A stretch of DNA of 63,981 bases, the filler included, from Lenisia limosa (lineage: Eukaryota > Protista > Breviatea), in the NCBI GenBank assembly GCA_001655205.1. It is 9 parts of 9 records of this genome, joined end to end, with 100 filler letters (N's around TTAATTAATTAA, not from the genome) between each part and the next. Parts side by side here need not be neighbours in the genome. Positions count along the whole stretch, not along the records: positions 23,862 to 50,715 come from LPNZ01005678.1; 8 more parts are not named here. One strand, given 5' to 3'. The notes under the pieces were generated by a model, which saw nothing but the letters and a program-made list of their open reading frames with translations, was not told the DNA's origin and did not search any database. Both the position numbers and the translations under genes were made by a program. Shown piece by piece: positions 25,701 to 42,100 of the stretch (position 1 is the stretch's first letter; each line of letters opens with the position of its first letter).

Positions 25701-26328
25701 TGACTGAAGTACTGATATTGTTTTCTTTGTGCTCTCAGAATGTGCCGCTGAACCTGCGGAATAAACCTCTTAGACTGTCAAGAAAAAGGGGAAAACAAAC
25801 TTAAGCAATGGAAATTCAAGAATAGCGAATAGCGTACTTACAATCACATAAAACAAAAACTCACTTGATTCAGAAAACTCTTTTCTGGCAGTGGAGGCAT
25901 CAACACAAGAGGATTGCATTTCAACATTCTTGGATCTGGGAAGGTGAACGGGAAACAAAGGGAAGTGCAAAGATTTCAGCATGAATCTCCATATCTTACC
26001 TTTCTTGCCGAAGGGCATATTCTAGCATCCTGACACGTCGAAGAAGGTCTCTCCTCAAATTGAGATGCCCCTTTTTCTCTCCTTCAAGAGTTGTGATTCG
26101 TTTCTATAATATTTAAAAACTATTTAGAAGAATACTGGCTGTGAAACAGCTCCAAAAAGACCTTCTTACGTTAAGAAAATTTCTTTCGGCAGTCCACTGA
26201 GCCTTTTCAATCTCAAAACTTCTCATTTGCTGTCTCAAAAAGTCCAGAGCCTCAGTGATCTGGAGCGGAGGATTCCTCTCTGGAGGGACCATCTCCATCG
26301 CCTCAGGGCGGGCAGGAGCTGGAAGCAT
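22800..26328 (-). CDS. STRN: Striatin (STRIPAK / PP2A B''' scaffold): N-terminal coiled coil + WD40
   Basis: LDFLRQQMRSFEIEKAQWTAER|KRITTLEGEKKGHLNLRRDLLRRVRMLEYALRQER (striatin N-domain); WKPRWTLRSHFDQIRSVSFHPQEPFLVSG|SDDCTVKVW (first WD repeat). Exons beyond the linker (e.g. SITFFSAAQGK near 22850) are tentative. Confidence 0.92.
24591..24707 (-). repeat. 'Acceptor element' copy ending at striatin 3' splice site
   Basis: Minus strand: …CAGCCAACAGAGTTGATTTGTGCTTTTTTTG…AATTTTCCAATTTTAC(C)n TCAG|GAAGAA. Confidence 0.85.
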
Positions 26329-26658: not shown

Positions 26659-29600
26659 ATGTGCCTAAAATGGCTCTTGTTACTTTTATGTGTCCTAGGC
26701 GTACAGGCATTACGTTCGTTTGACGGCAACTATTTTTGTAACGCTGACCACGTAGGAAAGCCTGATATCTCACAATCCCACCTCTACCCTCTATCTTCGA
26801 CTATAAGTATCGGAAACATTGTCAAATTCGGTTGGTGTTCTTTTGGCCCATATTTCATTTCTAACCTGTATTTAGAGTGGGAAGCGGTTTCCTCTGATGG
26901 AAACACTTTTATCATCACAGAAGTTGACTTTGAGGAAATAACCAGCGTCTCTATTGACAAGGTTTGCCCTCCCCCCTCCTAAATGTATCTGATCATTGAA
27001 ACCTTTTCTTCATTTTGCCTCGCTTCCTTTACTCAATTGCATTATATTACGAACAGGTGGATATTTTCCTGAAGCATAATTTGAGCAGGCTATTTTCCTG
27101 AACGCTGACCTCTCTTAGCGTTTGAATGACCTCAACCTTGCTGGCTGGCAGTTGTCTGTTTCCGGCGATGCTGAGTTTAATCTCGAAATGGCCACTGATA
27201 GGTAGCCGGGGCGATAGGGAGAAGGATGGCAATCTATCCTCGGAAATGGACTTGTTTAGTGTGATGCAAAGATTGGAGCTGAACAAGAAGACATTCATTG
27301 GCCGCCCTGCATCTGATTTCACTCTCTAGCCAAGGCAACTTCCAGGCCCAGTTTATTCCACCGTTTGCAGGGACGTTTAATGTCCAGCTGAGCAGTTATG
27401 GTAATGACTCCACCCCAATGTCCATTATCAAGGCGGATAGAGGTGGGTGCTGTTGCTGACGTTCTTCCCACTGGCAGCTTCTCTTACCCTTTAGATTCAA
27501 GCACAATGAACACTGTGTACCTCTTCTTGGTTATCATCTTGCCATCAGCGTCCATCGCGCTGCTTCTCACCATGTTCCTGACTTTAAGCCATCCCAGAAG
27601 ACCGCAGCTCTATGTGTCGGATTTCCTTTGGGTAAGCTAACACTTCAAGAATGATTTTGTTTTTATCATTTCTCATCTTGCAGGGAGCCACCATGTGTGT
27701 TGTGATGTTCACTCTTGCCTTTTCAATGTGGGTAGTGTTGATGGATACAAAAAAATGGGGCCTTTGTTGTTGCTGACGCTGTAGCCCTTCAAATGGCGTG
27801 CCTGTGGAGCATTTGAGCGCCACCTCCTGTGTTGCACGCATCATTTGGGGCGCTTTCGATTACGGCAACCTCCCAGGAGATGGTCAGTTCTTTTGCCATC
27901 ATTAACTTTCTTCAGAACTGTGTGAGGAGAGGGAATCGCACGGTCTGAGTACCATCATCCCAGCACTGGGCGTTCGCCACCCTGACAAGGCCGTTTTCTC
28001 AAGTGCCAGTCTGGGGGGGGGGGTCCTATACAATTTGCCTCTTTTCTAGGTTTGACCCTTCAGCCTCCTTGGTTCTATGCTGCTTCGCCATCCTCTTTGT
28101 GGGCTTTGTTGCCACGCTCGTGATGTCAGCCATTGTGTCGACTCGGGGGCAGGAAGCGAATGGACGAGTTGTGCGGATCAGAGGAATAGGGTGGGTTTTG
28201 CGGAGGCAGTCTTATGCTTTAGAATGATCTTAACCACGATTGTGCGGATGATCACTTTGATCCATCCCGTTGTGTCAATGTTGGCGGCTTTCTCCATTAC
28301 AATTTCGAAGGACAACCCATTCTATTTATCTCTTACTATTTACGTAAGAGGGAGATGGTTTAGTTCAAGAAGGTTTTACTAATGCGGATTCTGACGTTTT
28401 AGATTGTCTTTGGACTGGGCTTTTTGCTTTTTGCGTTTCTTCAAAGAAAGAAGTTCTCCCTAGATGATAGTGCACAGGCCCCGTGTTCTCCAGGTACCTA
28501 ATCAATAATCTGTTTTGGCAACATTTGACTCATTCCCAGTGCTGATTCGCCCTGAGAGTACCCAAGTCTCCCCTGTCATATCCCCACTTACTTCAATCCC
28601 ACCCCTCAGGTTTGCCCTTTACAGCTTTTTTTTTTCTTATACNNNNNNNNNNNNNNNNNNNNNNNNNNNNNNNNNNNNNNNNNNNNNNNNNNNNNNNNNN
28701 NNNNNNNNNNNNNNNNNNNNNNNNNNNNNNNNNNNNNNNNNNNNNNNNNNNNNNNNNNNNNNNNNNNNNNNNNNNNNNNNNNNNNNNNNNNNNNCGTTCA
28801 GTGCAAGTACAACAACAAGCCACTCTTCCATTATTGGACCAAGTTCTATCAAAATCTCAAAAGCTGTTCCAAGGTGGTGGTGGGGGGTAATTTGGTTGGT
28901 TAATAATAAAAGGCCTAGTGGCTTTGTAATCAGCTTCTCTCGGATACCATAGGACACTACTGTATTTATTCCCTATGTTTCGCTTTATCTCACTACCTAG
29001 TCGGCCAAGCAGCATAAACGGCCTGTGTTTGTGGTACCGAGCTCATGAGGGTCCGCAGCCCGCAACCACCATTTTCGTCAATCTCTTTCTTGCCAGGTGG
29101 TTTGGACTGCCTTACTGCTGTCAATTTTCCCGCGTTGGCATCTTACTGCTGTAGTATCATTGGGTTCTTGCAAACGGGTTCGACAATGTTGGTCGCCTTA
29201 TCATGCCTCCTCACAACGGTATGCCTTGGGACTCTTTTGCTCAGTTGTTTCCTGGTGACATCTTAATCACTGTTCAGAGTGCATACATGGTTCATCTACT
29301 GGTCAACTCCTCCTACGCGGCACAGTCACGTCTGTTGATCGAAATGACTGGTTGGCAAGGCTTCCATGGAGCTTTACTGTGTTTTTGTTCATTCCTTAGT
29401 TCGCGTCACCTTTTGCGTGTGCGTTACGACTGTTCTCCTTCTGTGCGACACAGACCCGACTTCCGGCACGGCTGACTGGACCGTTTTCATTACCGTCATC
29501 ATCACCTTGGCTGCCTACATAGGGTGAGTGCTTCAGCCCGACAGCTGCTCTGACATTATAGTTTGCTCTTTGCGTTCTTCCAGGCAGTGAAGCCCCATTT

Positions 29601-32600
29601 GCACAACACGCTTGCCTCTCGTCGTCTTGAGCGTGCACGCAAACAGCGCACGCGAAACCCCCACACGCTTCCTTCGGTCACCTTGGCTCCCCTTGCAGGA
29701 TGTTGGTTGTGGATAGTAACCCCTTGTGACCTCTTTTTGCGCTCGAATTCTTGTGACCCCACAGCCTCATCCCCCGGGCCTCGACGACAACTGTTGTCAA
29801 CTATGTCCTTGGTGAGCCATTTTGCTATATATGTGGTTTTTGTCTTAATACCAACGTTGCGTGTTTCACCCAACATCTGACTCCGCTCTAGGAAGCTGGC
29901 GAAGGAGCCCAGCGTCCCGATGGGGTGTCCACTCTTGATATGCCTGGGGTAAGCGCATGGCTTTTTTAATTCATGGTTGTGGCAAATATCTCATCACATA
30001 TTGCAGCCCAAGAGCAGCCCTTCATCAAGACGGTCATCTCGACAAAGCGGAAATCTCAACATTCCTGAAGCCCATTTACGCCGTGCCAAGCTGCAGGTGT
30101 GTGGCCAGTGACTCCCTTACCTTCTGTTCTTATTTTACCAATCAAGGCTTTTTCGGATGTGATTAGCAAGGTTCTTCCCGACATCTATATTTCGGGAGAA
30201 AAGGTTTGCTGAGATAACGGCTTGTATTTGTCTGTGTTATTAATTATGTTACCAACTTATTTCGTGCAGCCTACAAGCCGCATGCAGTCGCTCGACCAAC
30301 ATGGTATCAAAACTATCCTCAACTGTGCATCATCCCTATTACGGAACCACTTCCCTCTCTCCTACACCTACCACGTAAGCCCTAAGTGTTACCATTCACC
30401 ATTCACAACACAGACCCTCCATCTCCACGACACTCCTGATGACGACCTTATCGCTGTTATTCCAACTGCCATTTCCTGGATTGAAGTATGACGAGATCTA
30501 ATCCCCCCCCCCCCTTACCATGTAGTCTGCNNNNNNNNNNNNNNNNNNNNNNNNNNNNNNNNNNNNNNNNNNNNNNNNNNNNNNNNNNNNNNNNNNNNNN
30601 NNNNNNNNNNNNNNNNNNNNNNNNNNNCCATCGTTATTGCCTACGTAATCCTCACCAACAAATACGACTATGACGATGCAATGGCTCTCGTAAAAGTCGG
30701 CCTATTCAGGACTTGTTTTGGATTTCTGAAATTTACCCTGGTTTTACCTCTTTTCCTCTTGTAAATACTATCACGTATGTTATCGAGGCGAACTGTCCTC
30801 TCACGTCCTCCAGGCGGGCCGACCGATCTGCTCACCCAACCCGGGCTATGTGGCGCAGCTCATGTTATGGCGAAGATGGGCCGTGCCGTCTCCTCAAGCT
30901 CCCCCCACTCCACCCCTCAGAATATGGATCATGGTGAGCTTACCCTCCAGCAACGTTAGTGACATTACAGGCCCCACATTCCCCTCTCTCCCCGCACCAT
31001 ATTGTCGGCTTCCGCATGGACCCAGCCGTCTGCACGTGCTTGGACCCGCGACATGTGTACGTCATACAGGTCTGTGTTCCTGGGGTGCCAAACTATTCCT
31101 CATATTATGGCATGTTCACATTGCTCTTGTTCACCTTTGCAATTGTTTTAACGCGGTAGTCCCCCACAACTGTTTACGTGTGGGAAGGCAAGCTCTCAAC
31201 ACACTACCACCAAACACGCATGCCTTTCCTGGCCCGTGACACGTGGTTAGCAGCCGGCGGTACGATGAAGGAGGTCGAGCAGGCCGTCATTCCTGACTCG
31301 CACGGCTTCGACCTGACCGTTCTTCCAACCGAAGACGACATCAAGGAGTGTCTTGATAAGGCCGTTTTGACACCTGCTTTGACGTGAGGGCTTTTCTTTG
31401 TACTCTCTGGTCTTTTTTGTACCTTTTCCCTCTTGCATCATGATGGACAGCACAGTTGTTTTTTGACGTTTCATTGGGATTGGGGGGGGGGGGTAGCTTT
31501 AGTGTGGCAACTATTCTTGGTTGNNNNNNNNNNNNNNNNNNNNNNNNNNNNNNNNNNNNNNNNNNNNNNNNNNNNNNNNNNTTAATTCAAAAACAGTATT
31601 TTACTCCCCCGCCAGACACGCAGCACTTGCCGTCGGCACCGTCCGACACGACACTGAGGTGCTTATTGCCCGCGCTCAGGCTCTCAAGGTAGGCATGTTT
31701 TGGTTCCAATGAAGTGCTAACATTAAAGGGAGGCAAAAAGGCGCGAGCAGCACAACTTGAACTCGAGAAAAACGTACACTTGTCACCTTTTCTTCTTTTT
31801 CCTTTTGAATGTTGTTTCACTCTTTAGGCTGTTGCTGTTGATAACAGTGGTGTGCCAGAAAGCATCTATGGAGGTTTGGACTGGAGAATCAGGATACGAT
31901 TATTGTTTCGATGCTAATTGCCTCAGGGACACGAGAGTTTATCCCCACACCGTTTGCTGCTGGGTTGACGCTAGCTTCTTGGGTTGTCGACCGGGAGGGT
32001 GAAGTCCTCAAAACGNNNNNNNNNNNNNNNNNNNNNNNNNNNNNNNNNNNNNNNNNNNNNNNNNNNNNNNNNNNNNNNNNNNNNNNNNNNNNNNNNNNGC
32101 AATCCTCCTGTGCCTCTTTGATGTGAAGCAAAGTCCTAACCTTCATATCAGGACGGAGTGGCAAGATACTACGGATACAAAGCTACTGCAGTACATCACA
32201 AGATGCGCCCAGTTCACTGACACTTCGCAGGAGGAGCAGGTGAGTAACTTAGTGTTTTCTTCAATATGTCTTCATATTTGTCGTTTTTTAGGGAAACTTT
32301 TAGTTTTCTTCAACATGCCTTCACATTTGTCATTGTTTTGGAAAACTTATCGTTTTCTTCAACATCGCTTCACATTTTTCATTATTTAGGATGTCGTTGC
32401 GGTATCTCCAAATGAGTCTGACGTTCTTCAGCTCAAAGTAAGCCTTACCCACCCTCGCAATATTGACCCACAGTACCCTCTGCTCTTCGAGTATCCTTCG
32501 TGTGAGGCTCTTCCGCTCTTCGATTCTGATGACCTTCTACCGGACCAAACATTCATCCTGGTGACTGATGGGTTGGGGGAGTAGTTTCAAAATGGTGTGG

Positions 32601-32969
32601 TTATGGATATGATTTCTTTTGATTTGTTTTGACGGCTTCGGTCAGATACAGCTTTAGTCAATTATTATTTCACCCTCTTTTTTCTCACCTCTCAGGCCGG
32701 TGTACCATGTCTGGGTCGGGGAGGATTGGGCAGGTGATGAAATCTGGGTGGGTGGCTGGTGCAACTTGAGAGGATGATTACATCACTAACACCAATAACA
32801 TGTCCAGTCTGCGTTTGCGCCCGAGGCCGTTCTGGGCCTTTGCGAGAGCCAAGGACTGGAACCCGGCTTGGTCGAGGTCATATTCGGCTCCGAAGGTAGG
32901 TTGTTGTCTGTTCTTCCTTCTAACCTTTTAGAACCGGATTCTTTTTGGGAGTTTTTTGTTAACGGTTAA
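26659..32969 (+). CDS. Receptor-like multi-pass membrane protein fused to an MKP1-type dual-specificity phosphatase and gelsolin-like repeats
   Basis: Signal peptide MCLKWLLLLLCVLGVQA; Ig/filamin-like GNFQAQFIPPFAGTFNVQL; >=7 hydrophobic segments. Then VISKVLPDIYISG…GIKTILNCA…LHLHDTPDDDL…WIE…IVIAY…RPICSPNPGYVAQL (DSP fold), APHSPLSPHHIV…LDPRHVYVIQ…VYVWEG, FDSDDL…VWVG…GSE|EPDSFWEFFVNG*. The catalytic HCxxGxxRS is expected inside N gap 30531-30627. Confidence 0.75.
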
Positions 32970-33151
32970 TGTTCGTTTCATGTTTTTAGGGGGGGGGGGT
33001 TCTTGTATTATGTTAATCTCTGTTCGAGACAATCCGAAGAGACCAAGAGGACAACAATGGGGAAAGATGTACATGTATATTTGAATAGCAATATCAAAAA
33101 ATAAACTGCTTAAACGTTACAATTAAATGTTAAATAAGACATCAGGGAACA

Positions 33152-36100
33152 CTAAACTTTCACAGCGTTAGTGTTGCATGGTGGGCTGTCCAGGGTTGTG
33201 GCAATGCTCATTTCTGACATTCGTTGTCGTTCCTTTTCATCCCGTTCTTGGTCGCTTGCGTCCGCTAAATCATAAGCCTGAAGAAACACCTTGCTTTGCC
33301 TCTCCCACCCCTCCCCCTCTCTCACATTTGTTTTGTTCACTGGGGACTGACTAAATGGATAAGCCAAGGGGTGGTATCACTGCGTAAATGTATGAATTTC
33401 CTCGTCCCCAACCTCGTCAATCTTATCAGGATCAGTGGCTTGAGACTGTGCGTGAGTGGCGTCAATAATAAGGTCTTCCAGCGGCTGCCCATTGCCGCCG
33501 ATATCCAGATCGATAAGCGTCTTGTCGCGGTCTTCCTTCTGAGTATTACCACAGAAGATGCAAATCAGAATGCAGACAACAGCCAGGACCACAAGCCCAA
33601 TGGCAACGTAGATCATGCCATCATCGTCATCACTTGAGGAGTCGCGTTGGTCGCTTGTGACAGGGTCTGAGGATTCGATAACATTGTCCGAAGACGAAGA
33701 GCCAGTGGAACTGATAAACACGAACTGCGTGAAATGGCAAACGTCAGTAGCGACGAGGGAGTCATAGATCTCGATAATGGGTGGGGTGCATGTTTCACTC
33801 GCGTCCATCCACTGGCCGTTGAGGTGGATCATGAGCTTGGTGAAACGCGCGTCCGACCCATCCGTGATGTTAACGGAAATCTGGACAGCTCTGTCCAATT
33901 CAACTTCCTCAATGACACCAGTACCGTTTCTATATGGTGAAATGAAGAAGGACGTGTAGACTTTGGTAATGTCCGCGCTATCTGGCGGGTCTTGGTATGA
34001 CGCATGTTCCTCTGTTGCCAGGTTGAAGGCAATGTCAGATCCTGAAACAATGAGAGAAAACTAAAAAAACGCACATTTTAAATACCATATTGAATGAGAG
34101 ATTGGCTTACCAAGTGGAAGGCCTGCACCGCCGGGGACGCTGAGCAGAATATCGGGCCTAACACCGTCCGACTTGAACAAAGAGAGATCGTAAGATCCGA
34201 GAGAACTGTCAAATGGAATAATCCTCGTTTTTGTTGATACACAGTAATGAGAATAAGGCAGGAAGCCAGATGGGCACTTGTGGCATAAACGGTAATTGTC
34301 AGTTTCACAAACCAGGCAGATTTGTGAATCCAACGGGCGTGGCAAAGTCAAACACTCTAACTCAGCGATGGGCTGACAAATTGAAGGTGAGCCGCTGCAG
34401 TTGAATCCTGGTTGTATCGCACAGTTGACACAGGCTTCATGAACCCCAGCAGGATCGCAGTCTTCATTGACATCAATAACTCCATTTCCGCAAAGCTGAT
34501 AACAACTGTCTGTGCCATCCCCACAGGAAACATGGAAGACTGCTACTCTGCCACTTGCTACGGGTCGGCATGTCACGGTCTCGTCTGTTGCTTCAGTTGT
34601 GACACCGGTTTTGGACCATTGTATCCCGTTCCAAAAGAGGCAAGTCGGTTGACAAAGCGGGCAACTATGTGGCTGTTCCCTCAGCTTCCAGACTGGGAAG
34701 GACACAGAGTAGTCTGACAGTGGTTGGACCACAGACTCCGTGTTAACAATAGTAAAAGTGGCAACATGTGAAGACGCTGGGAAGGTGTCCGGCAAACCAA
34801 CTGCCACGTCATACATAAGGTCGGGTGCCAGTGTGCAACGAGCGTCGTACACTCCTGTGCTCATTGAGCCAGAAGGAACTGCAAAATCGACATCATAAAC
34901 CGACGAGCTGAAGGTCCTGGCTGAGTCAAAACGCTCAGAGTAGAGGTAAAAATTGTTGTCATTGCTGGAAAATACTTCCCCGACATATTGGAATGTCTCG
35001 GTTGTTTTATTGAAGATGGAATTGACAAACTCATGGAACTGAAGGTTGGAAGGCGAGCGTCTAGCCTGGGTGCGGGAGAGCGCAACCGCCAAAGCAGTTG
35101 ATTGCTGGAGGTTGTCAAAGAGCGAGTCACGAGAAATCGGCAAGGTAGAGGCGAACGAAGCTTCGAAGAGTTTGATAGCCTTGGTAGAAACGGCGGTGTC
35201 GAATGGACCGTTCTCCTTTATCGCAGTCAGCGTACTGAGGACAGACCCCACTTCAATGTCGTTCACGTAGTCTTCCAGTACTCTCAACATTGTGACCAGC
35301 AGGTCAGCGGAGAGTTCTCTTCTCTCAACCTTTAACTCAGTGTTTATGAGAGCTGTGATCAGTGACAGGACAGCTGTTGCCTCCTTAGTCTCCCACGCGT
35401 GCTCTTGTACGTCTGAGATAAGGTTTTGTGCTTCAGCAAGGGTGATGTTCGGGCTGGAAGCTGAGACCTTCGTTGTGGCAATTGAATACGAGAGGAAACG
35501 ATCAACAGCAAAGACACCAACAGTCTTCTGAAGGCCCGGTTCTGAGCCGTCAGCAAAATGTTAATGGTATTCAGAATGTAGGATTGAAATGATCACATTA
35601 TCAAACTATTTTCTTGTTTCGCTTTTGTTGGCCATCATAGTGTGACCGGGATAAGTCTTGACCTGTTTTATTTGGGATATCACATATCATATCAAATCGG
35701 TCGACTTTTCCCGGTCACTGTATATCATATTATATGACACTCATACCAGAGTGAAAACCTCAATAGATACTGGTAGGGTTATGAAAAGCCACACCAACCA
35801 GATGGGGAAAGGACCACATCCACGTAGTCTCTGGACGACAGCGTAGACAATATCCTTTTCGGCTCTTGAGGGCCGTTTTGCTCAAAAAACTGGTATTGAA
35901 TTGGAGCCTAACAAGTTAGTGAAAGCATCAATAAGAGTAGACAATAAATAGCACAGCACCCCCCACCGAATCAGATGTCCAGCCGTTGGCCGTGAGCCGG
36001 ATGGTTTCAGTAACGGCTGTGACGGAGTCCGCCGATACCAGCACTTGTCCGTCAGTCGGTGGCGTGCGGATTGGTACGTTAATAGATGTTGTGGATGAAC

Positions 36101-39100
36101 CGGCCTCGTCTTGTACGTAGCAAGACACTGTGACCGTCGCACCTGCAATGAAAGGTCCTTGAAGCACAAACGAAGGTGACGTAGTGTCATTAGTGTGGGC
36201 TGTCAGGTCAATAGAGTCGGTAGACCATTGGAACGAGAGGCTGGAATGGTATTCTGTTTGCACTTCAGTGAACACAATAATTGATCCACTAGGGTGGGCA
36301 CCGTAAGGCACATGGGGGGATATGAGGGTCACCGCAGGAACATAGACAGGAAGAATGGTGATTACTTGTTCAGTGCTGGATAGTGCTAGGCTTCTGGAAA
36401 GAGTCAAAGTGAACTTAATCTGACCAACAGGAAGGCTAAATGCTTCAAAAGAAAGCCGCTCAGAGGCGTTCAGCTCCAGTACGCCACCCGAACGATTCGT
36501 GCATGGCATGTTTGACAGGACACTCACACATTGCCACGTCACACTTTCCGCATCGGCAGCTTCGGCCTCGGAAGCAGATACCTCTAGGGCTGAGCTCTGG
36601 GCCACCATACGAGATGCGCCGCCGACTATTTCTGCATTTGGCGGTGTGGGTTGGCGTTCAATGTCGAATGAGAATGTTGATGCCAGGCTGGGGTTAGACT
36701 TCATAGCTACAGTAATGCTGATGGTGCAGTTGGTGTCCCATGGCATTTTGGATGCAGCTGCCACAATACGAGGTTTGTCAGTGGCCTGGCCATCAAGCAT
36801 ATTGGGGCATGATGCAGCCCATGAATATGTCACTACCCGGTCATCCCCAACCAAACACTTGGACACTGTCACAAAGGCATGGAACGTGGTGGAGCCTGAG
36901 AGGTAGCGAAGGCCACTTTGAGGTACGCTGACTGTCGGAACACTAGGTGCTTCAACAGAGAAAGTGAAGGACTGTGTGGCCGAGTGTTCAAGGTAGTTCA
37001 GGACACTGGCAACGATGGTGTACTCCTGACCGGGTTTGAGTGCAGTTTGAGGGATGGTGAGCACGTGACCCTGGATAATGGAGTTGGCCACGACGTCATC
37101 CAAAGACGACCACTTCACAACCGAATCGCGGCCGCCCAAGTTGCTTACTGCTGCAACAATACGAAGACCATCACTGCAGAAGGAAACCACCTTCGGACCC
37201 GATATTTGAATTTTGGGATATATGGGGGCACAGGGCGGCTCTATTAATACTGTTCCTGTCAGCTCATGGGCTTCCTTGCCTTCACGACAAACATGAAATG
37301 CTCCACCCTTAAAGGTGAGCGTGTTTCCGGCCAGGAAAATGGCCCAAGATGTGCAGAGAATCTCGAGTGTCGTGGAGTTGCGAACCACTACCACTGAGTT
37401 CAATCCCAGGAGTTCAGCAGAGTCAAAGTCAAATACTAACAGAACGGGTACTTTTGTATTGGGCTTATCACTCATGACTGGTTGAGAGAGCATGATAATG
37501 ATAGTTGAAGCAGAATTGATCTTTGCTCTCTCAACAAACAAATCATCCGTGTTGGCATGGCACTCCACCACAACGTCAAAAGCCACAGTCTGTGACGCTT
37601 TAACAGCTTCATCCACAATCGTAACAGAAAGGTCAGCTGACTCGGGAGGAACATTGGAGTCAATGGGCTTGACAAAGGTGTATTCAAAGAGACACATCAC
37701 ACCGGAAAGGTCAGTCTTCACGGCAAGCACCTGTCCTGAGGACTTGCCCCGGATGGTGGGGCATTTGGTGGCCGACGGCAGAGCAAAAGTTGCAGTTCTG
37801 GACTGAGCCATGACGGAGTACTCGTTTGCCGAATTGGCATCATGGATGGATAGCGACGCCAGACCAAAACCCCCGTAGCTGCTGAGGGGCAGTGTTTCGC
37901 CATTTGAGAGAACCGGCGCTACCTCCTGCGGAACGGGTCTCACAATGCCAACCGCTGTCAGCATGCTGCTTGCATCCTCCCCGACGGACACAGTGAAGGT
38001 GACATCTTCAGTTTGGCTGCTGGGGTACAACACTCGAACTCCGTAAGCAAGCCGGACAGCAATCTCGTCAAACGTGCCTTGAAAGGTAACTATATAGGCA
38101 GAAGCGATGCCAGTGAGAGCAAAGAGCCCTGAATTGCCTTTAACCTTGACAACCATGGTCTTGGTGGGACTGGCTGTAATGTTGGATAGAGTAGGGAACA
38201 CATAGCACTGATCACTTTTGGAACATTCAGTGAGACCAGGAAGAGAAATGGACACCGTCGTCATTTTAGTGCCAAAAGATCCGGTCAACACAAACAATCC
38301 TGAAGCTGGTTCCGAGTTGACCTCTTCACTAACAATTGAGTCATCATTAAGAACGCATGTTAAGCTGCCCACAGCCACATCGCCGGCGCCGACAAGGCTT
38401 GTGATGTTGGCCTGCCATTGCTTCGACGTAATCCAAGATCCAGACAGGGCAAGAGCTGTGACGCTAGGTGAGCAGGTGATACCCATTGTGTCACTTTGGC
38501 GGACAGGTTTGCTGAAAGTCACAGTGAGAGTGTCGCCTTCAGAAATGACATTGTCTTTGTTCATGGGGTCATTGGCAACAAACGAAACAATTTCCGGCGC
38601 AGTTGCAAGAGTTTGGAACGTCTTATCTACACAGTTAGAAAATATGAAAACCAATACATGCGTAATAGGCATATTTACTTTCCCACTTACTTGAAGGATT
38701 GGATTCGGCATTGTTGAAGATGGTAACAAAGCTGACAGTGTAACTATGAAGCGGAACAAGATCAAAGAACCGGAACTCCAGATCTGTGGTGAAAACCTCC
38801 TGGTAGTCGCCGCCCGATAATGACACTCTGAACGACGTCCCTCCAAAGACATGGTCCCAGGTAACCAAGGCCGAGTGTGCTGTTACCGCAACTTCAATGG
38901 AAAACACTGGGGGAGGAGGGCCGCTCATCGTGGCAAAAGAAAACTCATCGGAGGGCAAACTACAAGCCTTGGAACTGCAGTACCTGACGGTTGCCGTGTA
39001 ATCCCTGTTGTTCTCGAGGGCACTGGTGGTAATGATGGGGTTGTCAGATGTGATGTTCATGTTAACGGGAGTGAGGATGTTCACAGAGTAGTTCGCGAAT

Positions 39101-42100
39101 CCCGCCGGAATGGGAACGTCAAAGATAACGTTAACAACAGAAACACTAACGAATGGAACGGAAGGCTGAGCAAGGGGGCAACTGGGGGTTATGAAGCTAG
39201 GCGCGGAGATTCGGTCGGACTCTGCCTCGTCCTTAAGGGCCGATACCGAAATGTTGTAAAACGTGTTTGGTAGGAGAGTTAAGTCAGCAAACAGTTCTCC
39301 GATAATGATTGGGGTCTCCCAGAAGCCGTTTGCACTGATTCGAACTGCGTAGTTGTCCGTCAGAATGTCGCTACTTTTCCAGGAGACAAAGCCAACCTTG
39401 CAAGAGTACAGCACAGCAACATCTGAAGGAGCGGATGGCGCTTCTCCAAGTGTGCGGAAAAAGTTGGACGACACAGTGCTTTCTTGTTCACTGTTGAAGG
39501 ACTTGATCTCGAGAACATAATCCGTGGCCTTGGTCAGCCCCATAAACTGGTAAAACAGGACGCTTGGGGGAAGGGTCACGGTTTGCCCCCCTGGCTGAAG
39601 GGAAAGGACATGCGACACGTTTCCTGGGGTGAACCATATGACCTCAACAGATGTTGTTTGCGAAGTAGTGGCAATGTTCGTGGGGGCAGCCGGAGCCGAA
39701 CACGTCAAAACATTGGCAATGCATCCGTCAAGAGTACAGTGCTGACATTGTGGTAGGATGGAGCAAAATGCCGATACCTCCGGGCATTGAGGGAGGGTGG
39801 AAGTCACAACTGTCCAATTGGCTTGGACGCTGAGAACATGCCTCACCTTGATGGCAAACGTCTCGCCAGGGGTGAGAGCTACCATGCTGTAGCCAAATGG
39901 AAAGGACGTGGCATCTGTTAGCTGAATGCTGGTGCTGTTTGGTTGGAGCACCTCGTAAACAGCGGTGTAGTTGGTGCCCATTGATGACGAGCTCCATAAA
40001 AGGATGTAGTTTACTCCTGTTCTCATGACGGTGGCATTTGTAATGACAGGGTACGCACACATTTCCCCAAAAGTCCCATTCAGACACACACACGACGTGT
40101 TGAAGTACACCTCTCCAGGCAAGCATTTTGAGATACCAGGACACGTCAGCATCTCGCAGTTGGACATGCCCCTGCCCTCAAGAATGGTTTTGCCGCCAAA
40201 AGCCAGGGAGTCAAATGGAGCCAAAGCCACCGTGACCCAGGTGTCACCGGCAACAAGGGTAGAGTGGACGGCGGAATTGAGGGAAATGTTAGTGGGCGAC
40301 TTGAGATCGGGGATCTAGGTAAATCAATCGACTGAAGTCGCAAATATAATTGCCTATCTCTCAGCAATGACAAATTTCCAGCCTACAAAGAAAAGAGTGT
40401 CATTTGCTGATTCGTGGAGGTAATATAGGAAACCGTCAAAGGAAGAAATCTCCTAAAAGAGAATATGAAAGAATATCATTATTTACCCCTACGTTTCCTG
40501 ACTTGACAGTTACAATTGAGTTGTTCCAAATGCAAAAGTAGTCCGAAGTGGTGTTAGAAACGCATGCTATTCAATAACTTGAAGGATGGTTTCTTTAGCT
40601 TACGAGAAGTCCACGTTACGTTGGGTAGTATAATTCGACCCCCAGGGAAAGTGGCGGTTGTGTCCAAGTTGAATGTACTCTTGCCGGTTAAAAAATGATG
40701 ATGAAAACCAGAATTGAAGGGGCGCTACTTTCCCCTCCCCTACTAGGTGAGTTGGCTGCGATAAGATGTTGCTTTGGGTCAGAGAGAAGTCGTTGACATG
40801 ACTCGGAACAGAAATAATGACAGATTTCGGACTTGAGAAGTACATGGTGTTACTACCATAGTTCTGATGACCTTTCTGAAGATCACAGTTATACCCAAGG
40901 ATTCATCCTACCTCTGAACAGAAAATCATGTCAAAATGGGACACATTTTGATAAACAAAGCACAACATATCAGTGGAGTTGAATTCACATTCTGGTGATG
41001 AGTTGGTAAGGGAAATAGTATAACGCACCAAGAGGGCAGCTCAGTACATGAGTAATAATACTGTCTCCAATGGTTAAAGGTGTGTGATATTGCGCTTTCA
41101 GGAACACTCGCATTTCTGTGGCAAGTGGAATGATTCCGTCTTTGTAGGATACAGTTGCTGCATTTAGCATCTAATGACAATAAGGTCAATTCAATAGAAA
41201 AATCAGGTCACCTACAAATATATTCTGCCATTTTCCAGTATATGAAACCATAATCTCAGAGGGTTGAGTCGTAATCTAACAGTAAGAGGGATGTCGACAC
41301 GGTTGGTTTTCAAAATTAATTTAGGCAATTAATTGCAATCAACACTCAAAATAGAATTTCATATTAATAATTGCCATTACTTAGCCCTCCCACAATACTG
41401 TGATTTTTTTTTATGTACAAAACGTCAGAAGCATAGCAGATATAGGTATCAAAGGTTGACTGGAGACACTCTGAGAGTATTAGCAAGGTGACATGAGGTT
41501 ACCATTATGAAGACTGTTGGCACTGTAAACAAATTGCCTGTTCGCGAAGAAGTAGATCCCTTCTTTGTTAAGAGTACCAATTTCAAAGCTTGCAGATTCT
41601 GAAAACGTTAGCTTTCCAAGTAGAGTACAGGTAAACAGCGAAATAGTAACGGTGGTATGAAATCCTTTCAAAATGTTAGGTTCTTGCATTATGTGGTAGG
41701 TGGGTAATATGAAATGTCATACCAGTTGGGACAATTGTGACATTGCCGTTGATGTCAATTTCGAAAGCCTCATGTGTTCCATTAAACTAAACGGAATAAT
41801 TATCATCATTAACAGAAAAGGTGATTCAGAAGAAAGATTTGAAAGGTGAATTAAAAACATGGTTTGGATACCATCTCATTACAATTCTGTTTTTGAAATT
41901 ACTCTGACAAGAGAGGAAAAAAACAACAAAAAAAAAAACATGAGAAAAAAATCAACAAAAACAACACTTAACCAACCAGAAAGGTCCAATTTAAAGCTGC
42001 ATCTTCAGCAGTGATGTTCAAATAGTCCACCCGTGCCTAAGTCGTGAGCAGACAAGTTCTGTGGATCATGTTCAGAGAGCATTCCCAAAAGTAGAGAGAA

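Follow-up and report, generated by a model that had tools for sequence, protein, structure and literature searches.

In plants, mitogen-activated protein (MAP) kinase signalling is negatively regulated by MKP1, a much-studied phosphatase that is described as soluble. This article concerns a relative of that enzyme encoded in a 63,981-nt stretch of DNA from the protist Lenisia limosa (assembly GCA_001655205.1), referred to throughout as the window, in which the locus lies inside the piece at positions 23862-50715 (LPNZ01005678.1). The plant protein combines a dual-specificity phosphatase (DSP) domain with a gelsolin repeat and is nuclear or cytosolic (PMC11182583). The Lenisia locus is, on balance, best read as two tandem genes on the plus strand, gene A and gene B, the second of which would encode an MKP1-family phosphatase with an N-terminal anchor of four transmembrane (TM) segments; as modelled, gene B extends from about 28975 or 29045 to 32969 and comprises at least 25 exons and about 750 aa. 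Known MKP1 proteins are soluble, and the membrane tether predicted for gene B is probably new. If the prediction is correct, this phosphatase family would be deployable at a membrane, the tether would help to show where enzymes of the MKP1 type encounter their kinases, and a protein phosphatase would be added to the few protist enzymes that are joined to multi-pass membrane modules. The locus also provides a worked example of how assembly gaps, here hiding a catalytic loop and an exon, and genes lying in tandem can inflate an apparent fusion.

The nearest layout to that of gene B, four TM segments followed by a CX5R enzyme, is found in the voltage-sensing phosphatases (Ci-VSP, TPTE/TPIP), in which a cytosolic N-terminus leads into the four TM segments and a linker connects these to a CX5R phosphatase, likewise cytosolic. 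The enzyme of gene B is, however, of the DSPc/MKP1 type rather than PTEN-like and lacks a C2 domain, and its TM segments show no S4-like periodic Arg or RxxR pattern, the third containing one Arg and the fourth none. Animal receptor-type protein tyrosine phosphatases (PTPs) are single-pass proteins with classical PTP domains; they resemble gene B in being membrane-tethered Cys-based phosphatases, whereas the gene B anchor would be multi-pass, its enzyme is DSPc, and an ectodomain would be present only if the whole locus were a single gene. In a review of trypanosomatids, receptor-type PTPs were said to be absent from unicellular organisms (PMC2994645). The G-protein-coupled receptor (GPCR)-bigrams of oomycetes and other protists join a seven-TM (7TM) module to a PIPK, INPP, AC, PDE, or TKL domain, no DSP-type phosphatase having been described among them (PMC6033456). 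In these proteins, as predicted for gene B, the membrane module is multi-pass and the signalling enzyme lies C-terminal to it, in the cytosol. They differ in that no 7TM/GPCR family was detected at the locus by exon-level Pfam searches, and in that the segments number four, or nine if there is one gene, and not seven.

Gene B appears to have the domain order of the MKP1 proteins of plants and green algae, namely DSPc (PF00782), Gelsolin (PF00626)/DUF7904, and PF25466. Motifs common to both include RR.K..F before the DSP domain, a DTPDED acid loop, VHCSQGVSRS, RP..(N/S)PN.G(F/Y), RxxxxAPHS..P.H.V, LD.R..(F/V), VW.G, and a C-terminal EP..FWE.F. The differences are that gene B probably carries four TM segments upstream, that its first gelsolin-like repeat contains a long insertion, and that it is divided into at least 25 exons by introns of 32-192 nt, whereas metagenomic MKP1 relatives are intron-less open reading frames (ORFs). 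Identity is only about 45-58% even in the catalytic exon.

Transcripts and the MKP1-type phosphatase

The piece that holds the locus is eukaryotic, with numerous short GT..AG introns. Long ORFs are absent at 26.8-32.9 kb, where coding sequence takes the form of short open stretches spread over all three plus-strand frames, and T exceeds A on the plus strand across this interval, as expected of a transcribed sense strand. A DNA run holding the whole stretch (X1) and a polyA RNA run from the same study holding parts of it (X2) were both compared over 27000-32990. The X2 contigs contain 13 spliced joints with GT..AG ends on the plus strand between 28343 and 32930 (Table 1); introns 29949-30006 and 31689-31728 are represented by two loose RNA contig ends, which were resolved, and introns 27443-27494 and 28191-28222 are implied by RNA depth bins. 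The locus is a spliced, expressed gene on the plus strand.

All four gaps in the window at this locus were closed by a 20.6-kb stretch (L001) of a 256-kb ENA contig, reached through a look-up of the public gene call P0001. L001 contains no N, agrees with the window at 100% identity in each block, and is consistent with the loose ends of X1 contigs. Exons were chained by RNA-constrained splice runs on L001, and from 29562 to the TAA at 32967-32969 the resulting model has 22 exons, all with GT-AG introns, in a single open frame of 626 codons. Within the gap at 32016-32098 it reproduces exactly, and in frame, the 71 letters of the RNA contig. The phosphatase gene as modelled here appears to lack annotation: an exhaustive search of 1.84 billion representatives with exon 31160-31381 as query yielded no spliced protein model of the locus, the results being P0001, an unspliced ORF of the same locus, and repeat-protein noise but no homologues.

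Pfam, PDB, and Atlas searches were made with single exons or open stretches, exons being joined only for checks of frame and hydropathy. At this level the catalytic exon alone was significant in Pfam, the filamin, Ig, TRP/FLC, GPCR, and Gelsolin families gave zero matches, and PDB sequence searches with non-catalytic exons gave chance matches or none. The catalytic exon (L001:9345-9476) is formed by the gap at 30531-30627 and its flanks; it contains ILVHCSQGVSRSCAIVIAY and NEPILVHCSQGVSRSCAIVIAYVIL. Taken alone, it matches Pfam DSPc at E 1.3e-12 (48.1 bits, cut-off 33.5) and solved DUSP structures at E 1e-6 in a PDB sequence search; its score for Y_phosphatase is 26 bits. Its catalytic loop is VHCSQGVSRS, in which HCxxGxxRS is intact, and the general-acid loop LHLHDTPDDDL aligns with LWLQDTPDEDI of the family.

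Singly, the non-catalytic exons lack the length needed for Pfam or PDB searches, and relatives were therefore fetched. Metagenome contigs were scanned with the stop-free stretch that surrounds the catalytic exon, and of the 64 loci returned several have a second match, to the C-terminal exon 32474-32571, some 1 kb farther downstream (local tblastn with exon peptides). The intron-less ORFs of these relatives, 550-710 aa in length, carry DSPc, Gelsolin/DUF7904, and PF25466 (‘MPK1 gelsolin domain C-terminal’), and their database relatives, from grasses and green algae, are named protein-tyrosine-phosphatase MKP1. MKP1-like ORFs align with the DSP region of the locus by tblastn at E 1e-15. When a family hidden Markov model (HMM), a profile of 37 MKP1-type proteins, was searched exon by exon, eleven exons matched in strict collinear order over positions 144-646. 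The five DSP exons occupy positions 144-286, in order, at E 1e-15 to 0.08, and are followed by exon 30971-31069 (positions 305-339, E 4e-4), by weak matches in the first gelsolin-like repeat (positions 344-361 and 384-399, E 0.3 and 1.1), and by exon 32474-32571 (positions 551-580, E 3.6e-6), which falls where PF25466 starts in relative P0009 and is itself followed by further collinear exons. The C-terminal repeat also aligns with relatives by tblastn at E 9e-5 to 4e-4, its exons singly being not significant in Pfam. The first gelsolin-like repeat is the weakest part of the MKP1 match; its single exons were negative for Pfam Gelsolin and in PDB, and in the Atlas look-alike search exon 31160-31381 reached only 0.84 for Gelsolin clusters, below the level that counts.

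The resemblance to plant MKP1 is real homology, given these collinear profile matches, and the C-terminal part is, as judged from its sequence, a plant-MKP1-type DSP with an intact active site. The original prediction had recognized a plant-MKP1-like phosphatase here, and this is upheld by the DSPc domain, the region APHSP...LDPRHVYVIQ...VYVWEG, and the C-terminal MPK1_gelsolin_C-like repeat, the gelsolin-region motifs that it had quoted being located at 30971-31069 and from 31160 onwards. It had also allowed that the motif HCxxGxxRS, hidden in the gap at 30531-30627, might lack its catalytic Cys; with the gap closed, the catalytic Cys and Arg are both seen to be present, so that a pseudophosphatase is ruled out.

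Two further observations concern the family at large. Some metagenomic MKP1-like loci (L021, L022, L026, L044/L045) appear split, with ORFs that stop just past APHS, or have a GC content of 0.49 as against 0.65, and may come from intron-bearing or non-green eukaryotes. The EukProt proteins P0075 and P0078 are MKP1-type family members, and the family probably extends beyond plants and green algae.

Probable membrane anchor and junction intron

Upstream of the phosphatase, three modelled exons encode four hydrophobic segments as judged by hydropathy. The modelled frame scores best for codon usage in each of the three, narrowly so in the first two, and none has a Pfam match. Translation could begin at ATG 28975 or at ATG 29045, which would give open frames of 757 and 749 codons, respectively, to the stop; the candidate exon 28975-29050 has no coding signal of its own by codon scores.

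The last anchor exon ends at 29523 in phase 2, within ATAGG|GTGAGT, and its unspliced frame stops at the TGA at 29525-29527. Removal of the 38-nt intron that follows would join this exon in frame to the linker, and introns of 36-40 nt are RNA-proven at the locus. The GTGAGT donor scores 5.3, within the top 2.8% of 1234 GT sites, and the acceptor at 29561 scores 6.0, which ranks it among the top 1.9% of AG sites. A CTGAC precedes this AG by 9 nt; a motif of this kind occurs in 10 of 22 known introns and at 16% of all AG sites. An alternative acceptor at 29584 was ruled out, with a score of -4.2 and an immediate stop. The helix VFITVIITLAAYIG|LLFAFFQAV crosses the junction, its last part being supplied by nine codons at the start of the next exon, so that the peptide WTVFITVIITLAAYIG|LLFAFFQAVKPHLH...RRLERARKQRTR reads as one helix of normal length and then a basic cluster. 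The four membrane segments at 29097-29523 probably belong to the phosphatase gene.

The exons that follow (29562-30096) would supply the end of the last TM helix and then a basic, Ser/Pro-rich stretch of about 105 aa, which is probably disordered and would be a likely site of regulation. Their frame was set by continuity with the DSP exons. The linker contains RRAKLQAF, which resembles RREKFAHF of the family on visual comparison with the A1 consensus, and the tblastn alignments start just past this motif. Beyond the last helix, the presumed cytosolic stretch has 23 Lys/Arg against 14 Asp/Glu, including the RRLERARKQRTR cluster directly past the helix. The even number of segments and these basic residues would place the enzyme in the cytosol: an anchor of four segments with both ends inside would hold the phosphatase on the cytosolic face of the membrane, where it could dephosphorylate the phosphothreonine and phosphotyrosine of MAP kinases locally, and its gelsolin-like repeats might make contact with actin or Ca2+.

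Gene number and extent

Gene A, as modelled, encodes about 405 aa, comprising a signal peptide, an ectodomain of about 150 aa, five hydrophobic segments, and a short basic tail ending at the TAA at 28500-28502. Spliced RNA covers 27404-27442/27495-27631 and 28172-28190/28223-28343/28403-28482, four introns have RNA support, and exons 27684-27727, 27785-27882, and 27916-28008 are known from the model only; the modelled frame was the best by codon score in all six of the exons tested, out of ten. No Pfam family was matched by any exon or open stretch of gene A or the anchor. A resemblance to FLC/TRP proteins (PF06011) had been suggested, and no match was found at E up to 1 with any exon or open stretch, the exons, at 14-101 aa, giving low sensitivity; an Ig-like Kre9 lead for exon 1 in the Atlas look-alike search reached 0.77, below the level that counts.

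If the phosphatase is indeed fused to the anchor, gene A is likely to be separate from it. The other arrangement, which is unlikely, is a single gene at 26659-32969 encoding a receptor-like protein of the surface or endomembranes, some 1150-1200 aa long, in which a signal peptide and a beta-rich ectodomain would precede nine TM segments and, in the cytosol, an MKP1-like phosphatase. Such a gene would place the enzyme in the cytosol equally well, and its loop charges fit; RNA contig depths are alike in the two parts (2.0-3.6 and 3.5-3.6), and the excess of T over A is unbroken across 26.8-32.9 kb. Its difficulty lies at the end of gene A. The peptide there ends in QRKKFSLDDSAQAPCSPG at a GTACCT donor (28494) that scores 1.3, below every known donor (2.2-7.6), and the TAA follows six bases on. 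From this donor the sole single-intron link to the anchor is 28494-29096, which is in frame and has a strong acceptor at 29096 (score 5.6), but which, at a real length of 638 nt, is more than three times as long as the longest of 30 other introns (32-192 nt). Small exons within 28503-28974 were ruled out, being no better than shuffles: the best exon path across the interval scores -3.6, and 36 of 60 shuffles did equally well or better. Nor is the interval bridged by RNA. Its first 200 nt or so are T-rich, like introns or a 3′ untranslated region (UTR), while in the next 300 nt or so the AT skew is close to 0 and pyrimidines make up about 50% of the bases, much as in the intergenic DNA that flanks the locus; in six of seven long introns measured, the AT skew was -0.27 to -0.39. 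The stretch at 28503-28974 is most likely the 3′UTR of gene A together with intergenic or promoter DNA, the alternative being a very long intron. Two genes are favoured by the weak donor and TAA, the shuffle-level spacer, the 638-nt intron, the intergenic-like composition, and the available starts at 28975 and 29045, and on that reading the signal peptide, the first five TM segments, and what had been taken for an Ig/filamin segment would be part of a neighbour. Were the locus a single gene after all, it would represent a direct receptor-to-MAPK-off switch, and a new class beside GPCR-bigrams and receptor PTPs.

The remaining rival dispenses with the anchor and is quite unlikely. In it, a soluble MKP1-like enzyme would start at ATG 29803 behind a spliced 5′UTR, while the membrane exons would end at the TGA at 29525-29527 in another gene, which could code for a small four-TM protein or could be gene A, at its 3′ end. 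Several observations in its favour weigh equally against an anchored phosphatase encoded by gene B. None of the roughly 75 MKP1 relatives retrieved, a sample that is mostly green-lineage and not exhaustive, has an N-terminal hydrophobic segment, so that all would be soluble, and the combination of TM segments with MKP1 was found in none of them. ATG 29803 has A at -3, and the 178 spliced bases upstream are free of ATG, though this absence is not significant (P 0.20). The low-complexity linker exons are not marked as coding in the fused frame by codon scores. Two of the four anchor segments are moderately hydrophobic (1.56 and 1.68), on a T-rich sense strand that favours hydrophobic codons. RNA contig cover ends at 28482 and resumes at about 29653, and both disputed boundaries fall between; 28483-29652 being without an RNA contig, the junction of membrane and phosphatase parts is inferred, the arguments for the membrane exons and the start codon are confined to ORFs, splice signals, and codon usage, and the splice-site matrices were trained on some 20 introns of this same gene. 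The in-frame intron at 28494-29096, for its part, is compatible with one gene. Against the soluble enzyme, the stop of the membrane exons would fall inside a consensus GTGAGT donor, with an in-frame acceptor in the top 2% and a branch motif 38 nt downstream, a conjunction of in-frame signals whose chance is below 1e-3 on a rough estimate from site frequencies, and the start of the next exon completes the hydrophobic helix. At most 126 nt would be left between the stop and the first RNA-covered base (~29653) for a 3′UTR, a promoter, and the start of a 5′UTR, whereas other spacers here measure 330-500 nt.

Two tandem genes with an anchored phosphatase are thus preferred, and the original prediction, of one continuous frame from a signal peptide into the phosphatase, is retained in part. 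Its open frame holds for 626 codons from 29562 to the stop and is probably broken upstream, at the weak donor at 28494 and the TAA. The junction it had proposed, AAYIG|LLFAFF, stands as a predicted in-frame, phase-2 splice from donor 29524 to acceptor 29561 with strong signals, and attachment of the phosphatase to the membrane is probable in view of the four hydrophobic segments and the well-marked 38-nt intron. The proposal of a surface receptor is not sustained, as its signal peptide, ectodomain, and first five TM segments most likely lie in the separate upstream gene.

Coordinates, assembly and neighbouring sequence

Table 1. Features of the Lenisia limosa locus, in window positions; N, gap letters in the window.
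Feature	Position	Strand	Basis or remark
Gene A (26659..28502), exons	26659-26961, 27119-27201, 27330-27442, 27495-27631, 27684-27727, 27785-27882, 27916-28008, 28064-28190, 28223-28343, 28403-28502	+	
Spacer between gene A and TM exons	28503..28974	.	507 nt real, including the 187-nt gap 28643-28794; shuffles, composition
Candidate first coding exon, gene B	28975..29050	+	ATG 28975; alternative start ATG 29045 reads straight into next exon
Putative membrane anchor, exons	29097-29218, 29278-29350, 29400-29523	+	Splice sites, frames, codon scores, hydropathy
Predicted junction intron	29524-29561	+	38 nt, phase 2; splice-signal scores
Linker exons	29562-29701, 29765-29811, 29892-29948, 30007-30096	+	Joints 29701>29765, 29811>29892, 29948>30007 from RNA
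DSP domain, exons	30147-30203, 30270-30374, 30414-30485, 30526-30695, 30814-30933	+	Fourth exon spans gap 30531-30627
MKP1-type linker motif (APHSP..HIV) and first gelsolin-like repeat	30971-31069, 31160-31383, 31616-31688, 31729-31773	+	Joints from RNA
First gelsolin-like repeat, remaining exons	31828-31873, 31927-32015 (+4 nt in gap), 67-nt exon inside gap 32016-32098, 32152-32239	+	Joints from RNA
MPK1_gelsolin_C-like repeat, exons	32390-32437, 32474-32571, 32696-32747, 32808-32895, 32932-32969	+	All introns RNA-confirmed
RNA joints (X2)	28343>28403, 29701>29765, 29811>29892, 31069>31160, 31383>31616, 31773>31828, 31873>31927, 32015>32152, 32239>32390, 32437>32474, 32571>32696, 32747>32808, 32895>32932	+	71 other letters between 32015 and 32152
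Gap	28643-28794		152 N; real 187 nt; AT-rich, no coding signal
Gap	30531-30627		97 N; real 59 nt; in frame, encodes catalytic loop
Gap	31524-31581		58 N; real 18 nt; within RNA-confirmed intron
Gap	32016-32098		83 N; real 151 nt; 4 nt of exon, 68-nt intron (long T run), 67-nt exon, start of next intron

The gap lengths estimated in the window are wrong for all four gaps, and at least two of these (30531-30627 and 32016-32098) adjoin homopolymer runs, namely C12 (L001:9320-9331), which precedes the catalytic exon, and about 33 T's (L001:10790-10822) within an intron. Such runs probably explain the breaks in the original assembly. The public gene calls on L001, among them P0001 (L001:10001-10585), ignore introns and translate TGA as Trp, a W in P0001 corresponding to TGA in the window; they do not represent proteins and are artefacts of prokaryote-style gene calling.

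Several introns of the locus are extremely short, at 32-40 nt (28191-28222, 32438-32473, 32896-32931, and 29524-29561), and RNA confirms several of these; introns of the locus often have a YTRAY motif some 9 nt upstream of the AG. Head to head with gene A and 330 nt from it is an ORF on the minus strand (26113-26328), which by eye resembled the N-terminus of a coiled-coil/striatin-type protein and has no Pfam match. At the other end, a large receptor-like gene on the minus strand (33377-40230) lies tail to tail with the phosphatase gene and, unlike it, has few introns. Its ORF at 38635-40227 contains fn3 (E 2e-12) and that at 35928-38849 a REJ domain (E 1.5e-13), the next ORFs being Cys-rich (34061-35290) and, at 33377-33898, one with a single hydrophobic segment and an acidic tail.

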